Shown here piece after piece: positions 17,012-20,000 of a DNA stretch of 64,000 nt. How positions within the stretch are numbered: the stretch's first letter is position 1; every line of letters starts with the position of its first letter. The position numbers and the translations under genes were made by a program. Under the pieces are notes generated by a model. The model had not been told where the DNA came from. It ran no database searches and saw only the letters and a list, made by a program, of their open reading frames with translations. This stretch comes from Macrostomum lignano (lineage: Eukaryota), in NCBI GenBank assembly GCA_002269645.1, contig NIVC01001381.1, positions 85,220 through 149,219 on the forward strand. The letters are read 5' to 3'.

Positions 17012-20000
17012 CTGCGTGCAGAATAAAATCAAAGTGGGATTTTATAGACAGACAGACAGACAGACAGACAGACAGACAGACAGACAGACAGACAGACAGA
17101 CAGACAGACAGACACTAAGACAGACAGACAGACAGACACTAAGACAGAAGACAGACAGAAAGACAGACAGACAGACAGACAGACAGACAGACAGACAGAC
17201 AGACAGACAGACAGACAGACAGACAGACACTAAGACAGACAGACAGACACTAAGACAGACAGACAGACACTAAGACAGACAGACAGACACTAAGACAGAC
17301 AGACAGACAGACAGACACTAAGACAGACAGACAGACAGACACTAAGACAGACAGACAGACACTAAGACAGACAGACAGACAGACAGACAGACAGACAGAC
17401 AGACAGACAGACAGACAGACAGACAGACAGACAGACAGACAGACAGACAAGACAGACAGACAGACAGACAGACAGACACTAAGACAGACACACAGACACA
17501 CAGACAGACAGACACTAAGACAGAAGACAGACAGACAGACAGACAGACAGACAGACAGACAGACAGACAGACAGACAGACAGACAGACAGACAGACAGAC
17601 AGACAGACAGATAGACAGACAGACAGACAGACACTAAGACAGACAGACAGACACTAAGACAGACAGACAGACACTAAGACAGACAGACAGACACTAAGAC
17701 AGACAGACAGACAGACAGACAGACAGACAGACAGACAGACACTAAGACAGACAGACAGACACAGACAGACAGAGACTGACAGATAGAGAGAGACTGACAG
17801 ACAGACAGACAGACAGACAGACAGACAGACAGACAGACAGACAGACAGACAGACAGATACAGACAGACAGACAGACAGACAGACAGACAGACAGACACTA
17901 AGACAGACACACAGACAGACAGACAGACAGACAGACAGACAGACAGACAGACAGACAGACAGACAGACAGACAGGCAGACAGACAGACAGACAGACAGAC
18001 AGGCACAGACAGGCAGTACAGGCACTCACGGATACGCCTGGATCCGAACAGCAGCTCATCGAACTCAGCGCCGTCGGTTCGTTCGGCGCACGTCGCCACC
18101 CGGTGCCGGCGGGCGCCAGGCGCATCGTCGCTGTCGCCATCCAGGCAGCGCTGCAGCTGGCGCAAGAACGAACGGAAGCTCTGCTCATCACGCTCCCTCT
18201 TGCTGAGAGCTTGCTTGATAATCTGCAAATAAGGTTTGGTGCCATAAATTATTTAAGACTGGTACCGGACGCCTGCAGTTTCAGAACAGCAGCACAACAC
18301 AACAAGACAATACAACAAGACAATACAACAAGACAATACAAGAAACAAAAAACAACGGGCGTTCACCTCCTCGGATGTGCACCTTGTCCGACCATCAATC
18401 AGTTGCCTTCTACGCCGCGGAATCGGTCCTTCATCGTCATCGGCGTCCCAGTCCGCATCATCCCAGTCTCCGACAGCAACGCTGACCTCCAGTTTCCCGT
18501 TGACATCGACAGACACCCAGGCCGTAATCTGAACATCCGGGTCGTCCTCCGGAATGGGCAGCGTCAGGCGAGTCAATCGCCGATTGTTCTCAGCGATCGG
18601 CGACTCGCCTTCGTAGAAAATGACAGACACGCTGGCCTGCCGCAGCCAGTACGGCGACAGGGCGACCCGGCGACGCAGCGGGATGGTTTGATTGCGATCG
18701 GCGATGGGCAGAAACCGACCGCCGACAATCTCCACGCCGACTGATAGAGGCAGAACGTCTAATAGAAGAAGATCCTGGGCGGCCGTGTCAGTCGCCGAAG
18801 GAGAAGGGCGAGCCTTCTCGCCGAACAGTGACGGCTGGGAAGTTTCTCGACCAGCCTCCCGCCTCATAGCTGTCGGAGCAGCAGCGGCAGCACCAAAGCC
18901 CCGATGCTGAGCAGATGATGCTGCGATCACCCTTGGGGGTGGCGGCGGCTGTTGCTGTTGAGGAGGCGCTGGCTGGGAGCCAAAAGTCCAACCGTGCTGC
19001 TTGCCGCGGCTGGCTCTCTGCATCGCGGGAGCCATGTTGACAGCCTGGCCGAACACAATGGCATCCAGTTCTTGCTTGACCTGTTCGTTGACAGTAGATC
19101 TTGTGCGCTCCTTGTCTTCGACTAAAAATTAATTATAGGAGGAAAAATTGTGGACAAGCCTTTCTAATTAAGAATCATATTATATAAGAATCATATTTTT
19201 ATTTGGATACAAGCGGTCAGACCATGTTTCTTTTTGAGTCTCGAGCCACCGGCCGCGTCCATCAACAGGTTCTCTGCAGATTCAGAAGCCGCCGCTCTCA
19301 GCTCTGAGTCAGCAGTCGGGGCCGCCCCCTCCGTACTGTATTGACTCTGTTCGTCTTGCCGAACATCTTCGAGAGGTGGAAAGATGACGGATAGGTGTAG
19401 ATATGGTGAGGGACAGAGGTAGAGAGGATGAAGGAGAGGTAGAGAGTAGGGAGGGAGGGAGAGAGGTAGAGAGGAGGGAGAGAGGGAGAGAGGAGGGAGA
19501 GAGGTAAAGAGAAGGGAGAGAGGTAGAGAGAAGGAGAGAAGTAGAGAGGAAGGAGAGAGGTAGAGAGGAGGGACAGAGGGAGAGAGAAGGAGAGAGGTAG
19601 AGAGAAGGAGAGGTAGAGAGAAGGAGAGAGGTAGAGAGGAGGAAGAGAGGGAGAGAGGTAGAGAGGAGGAAGAGAGGGAGAGAGGTAGAGAGAAGGAGAG
19701 AGGTAGAGAGAAGGAGATAGGTAGAGAGGAGGGAGAGAGGTAGAGAGGAGGGACAGAGGGAGAGAGGTAGAGAGAAGGAGAGAGGTAGAGAGAAGGAGAG
19801 AGGTAGAGAGAAGGAGAGAGGTAGAGAGGAGGAAGAGAGGGAGAGAGGTAGAGAGAAGGAGAGAGGTAGAGAGAAGAAGAGAGGTAGAGATGAGGGAGAG
19901 AGGTAGAGAGGAGGGAGAGAGGTAGAGAGGAGGGAGAGAGAGGCATAGAAGAGGGAGAGAGAGAGTTAGAGAGGAGGGAGAGAGGTAGAGAGAGAGAGGA

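Follow-up and report, generated by a model that had tools for sequence, protein, structure and literature searches.

A candidate Hsp70 substrate-binding module in the variable tether of a Macrostomum lignano PARP4 orthologue

What might a fragment of a chaperone do in the gene of an ADP-ribosyltransferase? The question is raised by a stretch of 64,000 nucleotides from the flatworm Macrostomum lignano (GCA_002269645.1, contig NIVC01001381.1, positions 85,220 to 149,219 of the forward strand; hereafter the window, to which all positions refer), in which one minus-strand exon encodes the interdomain linker and the beta-sandwich part of the substrate-binding domain (SBD-beta) of Hsp70. The exon probably belongs to a gene for PARP4, the vault PARP, whose variable C-terminal tether also carries pieces of ubiquitin and actin. 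The ingredients, an Hsp70 SBD and the variable tail of PARP4, are known and their combination is new; its function we infer from sequence. In the explanation proposed here, a copy of the Hsp70 linker and SBD-beta was built by exon shuffling into this tether, between a conserved core of PARP, VIT and VWA domains (possibly preceded by BRCT) and a lineage-specific C-terminal domain, where it would act as a module of host-protein mimicry. Taken as a whole, this statement is put forward tentatively, at slightly less than even probability.

The exon is, by its alignments, a domain-level Hsp70 homologue in a new context. It lies in an open frame of 291 codons and is bordered by canonical splice sites, ttttag at the acceptor, preceded by a polypyrimidine tract, and gtgaac at the donor. 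Pfam HSP70 matches it with E=7.4e-14 over profile positions 379-483 of 599, which comprise the linker and SBD-beta only. A phmmer search against all PDB chains returned 69 Hsp70 matches, headed by human HSPA2 (residues 392-495, E=7e-15) and followed by Hsc70, HSPA1A and yeast Ssa1, then by DnaK, BiP and mortalin. Alignment with HSPA8 covers 97 positions, of which about 41% are identical. A preliminary description of this DNA had assigned about 100 residues (18777-18472) to Hsp70, from the linker to the end of SBD-beta, and had placed them in a low-complexity exon with an acidic patch behind them. The coordinates and the homology were recovered, and the translation shows both the PQ- and Ala-rich part and the acidic, Trp-rich patch. 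The distal boundary needs correction, as sequence homology ends after strand beta7 and beta8 is of low confidence. The exon terminates where lid helix A would start. Neither an ATPase domain (nucleotide-binding domain, NBD) nor a helical lid was found in the whole 64 kb by tblastn with full-length HSPA8 and a DnaK fragment (P0003), the sole match being the segment at 18759-18481; the earlier claim that neither lies nearby is thereby borne out. Because these two defining features are absent, the module does not belong to the Hsp70 chaperone family in a functional sense. The chaperone cycle is impossible for it, which leaves the module passive and nucleotide-independent.

The donor was probably a Hsp70 of the cytosolic type, since the linker QDLLLLDV matches HSPA8 and the best PDB scores fall to HSPA2, Hsc70, HSPA1A and Ssa1. 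A bacterial origin was also weighed: in one alignment the DnaK fragment is 41% identical to the segment vs. 36% for HSPA8, a gap of about five residues. Despite this score, the cytosolic-type origin is preferred. Some apparently prokaryotic proteins (P0028, P0041, P0058, P0116), encoded on contigs of 0.7-6 Mb, consist of the Hsp70 SBD region only (160-180 residues); they may come from dnaK genes that were called in pieces or cut short, or they may be true SBD-only proteins. An open reading frame (ORF) on the plus strand at 18103-18744, antisense to the Hsp70 exon and without a Pfam match, is taken as spurious. The acidic patch at 18400-18470 (minus strand) holds two DWD units and stands in place of the Hsp70 beta7-beta8 loop; it resembles bipartite W-acidic motifs, of the kinesin light-chain or the Arp2/3-type acidic-Trp kind.

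Is the module able to fold? AlphaFold2 was given a 158-residue segment aligned with 122 members of the Hsp70 family that the protein search had yielded. The predicted structure has eight beta strands and a mean predicted local distance difference test (pLDDT) of 71.8; the core lies mostly at 84-93, and the N-terminal residues that lead up to the linker fall below 50. Among the best 50 Foldseek matches listed from the PDB, all are Hsp70 substrate-binding domains, with probability 1.00 and template modelling scores of 0.55-0.65 (normalised to the full query of 158 residues, with its flanks). The eighth strand (LIDGRTR, residues 147-153 of 158) follows the acidic loop and has a pLDDT of about 58. 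Structure prediction had been suggested as a check in the preliminary description, and it does give the Hsp70 beta-sandwich, from an alignment of canonical Hsp70s. The module is thus predicted to be fold-competent. Relative to Hsp70 it has a 4-residue deletion in one loop and a 2-residue insertion elsewhere, and the beta7-beta8 loop is swapped for the acidic Trp-rich insert of about 24 residues.

In DnaK numbering, the hydrophobic-pocket positions I401, T403, F426, V436, I438 and I472 align with V, I, L, V, V and V, so that all six remain hydrophobic, and Q433 is retained. The arch residues are altered (M404 to V, A429 to Y), and the lid-latch residues D431, R445 and R467 are replaced by L, S and E, which fits the loss of the lid. 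A cleft of this kind could serve as an ATP-independent peptide clamp that captures extended hydrophobic stretches in proteins that are unfolded or still being made, with rapid binding and release. Its clients would be kept close to the PARP4 catalytic domain, or inside the lumen of the vault, to be ADP-ribosylated or sequestered. It is known from DnaK and BiP constructs that an SBD deprived of its lid still binds and releases hydrophobic peptides rapidly, and lid-truncated BiP (7a4u, 7a4v) is among the Foldseek matches; the conservatively kept pocket with its Q433 and the confidently predicted core of the sandwich point the same way. However, both arch residues are changed and half of the invariant residues are replaced. 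Moreover, a clamp leaves unexplained that the best-conserved stretch is the linker, a part that contributes nothing to substrate binding, and that the same tether holds an actin piece unable to fold. On balance, peptide capture as the function of the module appears rather unlikely.

A different indication comes from the uneven conservation of the host-derived pieces. Residues identical to the Hsp70 consensus occupy 34 of the 68 columns with a conservation of 90% or more vs. 6 of the 47 moderately conserved ones; against HSPA8 the corresponding counts are 32/64 and 8/36 (Fisher P=0.01). Measured against human sequences, which stand in for the flatworm donors, the longest run of identity in the Hsp70 segment is the linker QDLLLLDV (8 residues vs. 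HSPA8, permutation P=0.028). In the actin piece (61% identity overall) an unbroken match of 17 residues covers the D-loop (P=0.0006), and in the ubiquitin piece (43% identity) one of 9 residues lies at the C-terminal tail (P=0.011). The roughly 30 residues before the actin D-loop have drifted. One near-perfect motif per piece, with the rest drifting, speaks for selection to keep these motifs on display. Neutral decay, if uniform, would not be expected to yield this pattern, because the identities cluster at fold-critical columns and in three short motifs. Furthermore, a 59-residue actin piece cannot fold as actin, and its perfect D-loop therefore argues for selection on the motif that is displayed.

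The same pieces can be read as neutral passengers, that is, as fragments of ubiquitin, actin and Hsp70 genes captured by retroposition or exon shuffling and tolerated as spacer in a disordered tether that evolves fast and is prone to duplication. The three donors are classic abundant mRNAs, and the region, with its symmetric phase 1-1 exons and its introns of minisatellites, has grown by segmental duplication. Many Hsp70-invariant residues are lost, older gene models switch frame in the SBD, and orthologues outside M. lignano were not found in the collections searched. Against this stands the copy in the window, which reaches about 40% identity without a stop or frameshift and in which the retained identities are concentrated as described above. 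Neutral capture is an unlikely explanation, though one to be taken seriously. A decaying Hsp70 pseudogene was considered separately and rejected for the window copy, given its 291-codon open frame at about 40% identity and the identities kept at fold-critical columns.

To which gene does the exon belong? The gene upstream on the same strand (Table 1) is clearly a PARP4 orthologue, as judged from sequence. The motifs HGS, GIYF and EF(A/V)V align in its PARP catalytic domain, and the phmmer match of this domain to PARP1 (8e-12, about 1e-11) is far weaker than that to PARP4 (9.2e-40). The match of the VWA region is collinear over two inferred junctions, 27922>27564 and 27463>27343, and detectable homology to human PARP4 ends at residue 1213. 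A BRCT domain was not recovered: the candidate ORF at 37656-37976 has no Pfam or PDB match, and the 5' exons lie outside the exon model. Flatworms have the vault protein MVP, and M. lignano is reported to possess vault RNAs (PMC8824774).

Table 1. Coordinates of the PARP4 core, the variable tether and the Hsp70-module exon in the window
Feature	Position	Strand	Characteristics and evidence
PARP catalytic domain	32185..33690	-	Two exons, H-Y-E kept; phmmer 9.2e-40 to human PARP4 348-639; Pfam PARP
VIT domain exon	31224..31793	-	Pfam VIT 1.4e-32
VWA and post-VWA exons of PARP4	27227..28665	-	phmmer 1.7e-42 to human PARP4 935-1213
Ubiquitin-domain exon	26446..26766	-	Pfam ubiquitin 1.7e-18; intact HLVLRLRGG tail, then RGPSPE
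Actin fragment exon	25762..26004	-	Residues about 4-62, D-loop perfect; actin chains of the PDB match at 1.5e-13 (phmmer)
Eight short phase 1-1 exons	20092..25098	-	Acidic and repeated motifs; exon chain; direct repeat families D4-D6
Upstream exon	19223..19366	-	Phase 1-1, 144 nt; joined to Hsp70 exon in P0124, skipped in paralogue P0002
Hsp70-module exon	18367..19121	-	755 nt, 252 codons including split first codon; phase 1 in, phase 0 out
Low-complexity N-terminal portion of Hsp70 exon	18778..19121	-	PQ-rich and Ala-rich, about 115 residues; predicted disordered (translation)
Interdomain-linker motif QDLLLLDV	18754..18777	-	Equals cytosolic Hsc70/Hsp70 linker; invariant columns in alignments
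Homologous core, Hsp70 linker and SBD-beta strands beta1-beta7	18472..18777	-	Pfam, PDB, AlphaFold2, Foldseek
Acidic Trp-rich loop, then possible beta8-like strand QLIDGRTR	18367..18471	-	Sequence reading and AlphaFold2
Next downstream exon	18030..18222	-	Canonical splice sites; junction common to P0124 and P0001
Last coding exon with stop	16581..17011	-	Predicted all-helical C-terminal domain; possible MVP-binding-domain analogue

From the last exons with homology to PARP4, 27564-27463 and 27343-27227, a chain of 17 exons can be followed to a stop at 16581. All junctions are GT-AG and phase-consistent, eleven successive exons are symmetric phase 1-1, and the resulting frame of 1143 residues is without internal stop. 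The best database matches of the Hsp70 exon are three UniRef gene models of M. lignano (P0124, P0001, P0002), in all of which the exon is present. One of these, A0A1I8IEB8 (P0124), is 100% identical over the last exon, evidently derives from the same locus and has four junctions of the chain exactly: 20092>19366, 19223>19121, 18367>18222 and 18030>17011. The paralogue model joins 20092>19121 instead, and none of the three skips the Hsp70 exon. The last exon itself has only M. lignano matches among 1.84 billion representatives, apart from a repetitive protein of 4204 residues (P0125; 29% identity in 7 stretches) that is regarded as a compositional match. It has no PDB match, and its all-helical AlphaFold2 prediction has a pLDDT of 40.

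Taken together, the Hsp70 exon probably lies in the same gene as PARP4, and it would be translated as one protein with the PARP part. The preliminary description had placed it inside PARP4; its claim is sustained as regards the upstream gene, the phase-consistent chain and the retention of the exon by the models, but no model joins the exon to the PARP part. Indeed, the public models begin only at the exons at 20.2-20.5 kb. This would be expected if the module were missing from mature PARP4, either because a separate downstream (or spliced-leader trans-spliced) transcript yields a product of actin piece, repeats, Hsp70 module and C-terminal domain alone, or because a deubiquitinase cuts the protein after LRLRGG. 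An in-frame ATG, at which a separate transcript could start, lies just 5' of the actin-exon acceptor at 26004. As for cleavage, the ubiquitin piece retains L8, K48, H68 and V70 as well as the complete LRLRGG tail, and the next residue is Arg, not Pro; by analogy with ubiquitin fusion genes, deubiquitinases might cut at this point and separate the PARP4 core with ubiquitin from the actin, Hsp70 and C-terminal part. On the other hand, all junctions from exon 27343-27227 onwards are canonical and phase-compatible without an in-frame stop, and PARP4 needs a C-terminal part, for which there is no other candidate in between. The public models are themselves fragmentary, and A0A1I8IEB8 wrongly runs past the stop region into the neighbouring MFS gene. 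A module absent from the mature enzyme is therefore considered improbable.

The tether between the VWA region and the last exon is a mosaic, in which the Hsp70 exon follows two other host-protein pieces, those of ubiquitin and actin. The eight short exons between the actin and Hsp70 pieces were multiplied by segmental duplication (spacings of 1862, 1453 and 2259 bp). They contain the motif ER(D/N)IDAAIS(E/D)SKPKFD twice and in a diverged third copy, as they do a second motif, and their introns are filled with minisatellites of 9, 14, 24 and 30 nt. Two further arrays lie close to the Hsp70 exon, a near-pure (GTCT)n microsatellite of about 1 kb in intron 17012-18029 and a CT-rich array (CTCTCC/TACCTCT) of about 600 bp at 19400-20033; both produce long spurious ORFs on both strands. 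In the human PARP4 map the variable exon follows the VWA region and precedes the MINT domain at 1562-1724 (PMC12280208), and the flatworm tether is its positional counterpart. In vertebrates this largest exon of PARP4 encodes a disordered stretch whose sequence and length are hypervariable, and it is the sole part of the gene under recurrent positive selection; it was proposed to touch pathogen factors directly (PMC4038475).

How could mimicry work in such a place? In the mechanism proposed, the module would display those surfaces of Hsp70 that others recognise, namely an exposed hydrophobic linker and a hydrophobic cleft without its lid. Any factor that engages Hsp70 would then engage PARP4 as well; candidates include other Hsp70 molecules, the cleft of the module itself acting in trans, co-factors, and enzymes that attack the linker. 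In Hsp70 and BiP, the SBD of one protomer takes up the linker of another as a substrate (PMC3696110, PMC4608358). A unit of linker and SBD-beta would therefore be self-complementary and could also be engaged by cellular Hsp70. The tether would thus combine three mimics, the LRLRGG tail of ubiquitin, the D-loop of actin and the Hsp70 module.

A more specific version takes these mimics for copies of three hubs that microbes target (ubiquitin tail, actin D-loop, Hsp70 linker with SBD-beta) and the tether for an animal integrated decoy or tripwire. A protease or modifier aimed at any one of them would cut or mark the tether and thereby release or switch the enzyme, which would be severed from its C-terminal anchoring domain; if this were true, the vault PARP would be a sensor of effector activity. 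This version draws on analogy and is distinctly improbable. The preliminary description had taken the module for an ATP-independent peptide-capture module or a third decoy. Its position as third host-protein piece can be retained, whereas the decoy part draws its support from motif clustering only.

Several observations weigh against mimicry in a PARP4 tether. Of the residues that all Hsp70s conserve, half are substituted, the runs of identity were counted against human stand-ins, the AlphaFold2 model is not an independent test because its alignment consists of canonical Hsp70s, and strand beta8 is uncertain. The last exon has no match to human PARP4 1562-1724, the MINT domain, even though the full-length chain is present in the PDB set. 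The start of every gene model downstream of the PARP part counts here too, and so does the restriction of the Hsp70 exon and the last exon to M. lignano in the protein collections searched. Finally, all three older models switch frame, at differing points within the SBD. As the window frame is clean where P0124, from the same locus, switches, these events are attributed to indel errors of the older assembly; the same may hold for the homeologous and paralogue models, but if their frame switches are real lesions, some copies are broken.

Comparison with known systems shows where the flatworm module departs from them. It resembles the canonical Hsp70 linker with SBD-beta (DnaK 389-502, HSPA8 about 391-505) in score (E about 1e-14), in the predicted eight-strand sandwich, the linker QDLLLLDV, the hydrophobic pocket and Q433. 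In contrast to Hsp70, it has neither NBD nor lid, the lid latch is lost, about half of the columns conserved at 90% or more are changed, and it sits within a PARP4 tether. Lidless or isolated SBD constructs and linker-mediated oligomers of Hsp70 and BiP show that peptide and linker binding without ATP is possible (PMC3696110, PMC4608358; 7a4u). However, the constructs were truncated in the laboratory and the oligomers are regulatory states of complete chaperones, whereas the flatworm truncation is natural, encoded in an unrelated enzyme and known from its sequence. The vertebrate PARP4 variable exon (human exon 30; PMC4038475) is likewise the largest exon, mainly disordered, variable between lineages and placed between the VWA region and the C-terminal domain, but it contains no recognisable domain and shares no sequence similarity with the flatworm tether, which has its host-protein pieces.

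Integrated decoys of plant NLRs and the tripwires of mammalian NLRP1 and CARD8 also carry copies of host targets in a fast-evolving region of an immune-related protein. The flatworm carrier is an ADP-ribosyltransferase and not an NLR, and the likeness is one of analogy. With the ubiquitin fusion genes UBA52 and RPS27A the flatworm gene shares a ubiquitin with intact RGG tail that is followed by an in-frame polypeptide, here including an actin-derived piece; a ubiquitin-actin fusion exists in chlorarachniophytes. Unlike in these fusions, the flatworm ubiquitin is internal rather than N-terminal, and the part downstream of it is a mosaic. A description of a Hsp70 SBD within PARP4 was not found in the literature.

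The functions of PARP4 and of the vault particle are a long-standing question, to which the evolution of the vertebrate protein offers a single clue, the positively selected disordered exon. Since stretches of ubiquitin, actin and Hsp70 can be recognised in the flatworm tail, it suggests candidate partners by name, and these are open to direct test. Macrostomum lignano is amenable to transgenesis and RNA interference. If borne out, mimicry by the module would be a rare natural case of an Hsp70 SBD outside a chaperone, without ATPase domain or lid, and it bears on how far the SBD fold can serve as a stand-alone peptide-recognition module. Should the pieces be neutral cargo, the locus would still document a clear case of exon shuffling, with fragments of abundant genes inserted into a duplicating disordered tether.

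The surroundings of the PARP4 gene are of mixed content. Directly downstream, at 10964-15661 on the minus strand, lies a tandemly duplicated MFS-type transporter gene with long ORFs of HP(Y/L)QTEDT-like repeats. On the plus strand there are an exon for a glycosylase of the UDG superfamily (TDG/MUG-like, 3.3e-13) at 48549-49097 and a potassium-channel tetramerisation domain (BTB_2, 1.1e-30) at 60589-61437. At 2-3150 on the minus strand, the strand of PARP4, an NWD1-like STAND/NACHT NTPase gene (HTH_NWD1, 1.7e-11, with weak NACHT and nSTAND1 matches) constitutes a neighbour of the innate-immunity type.

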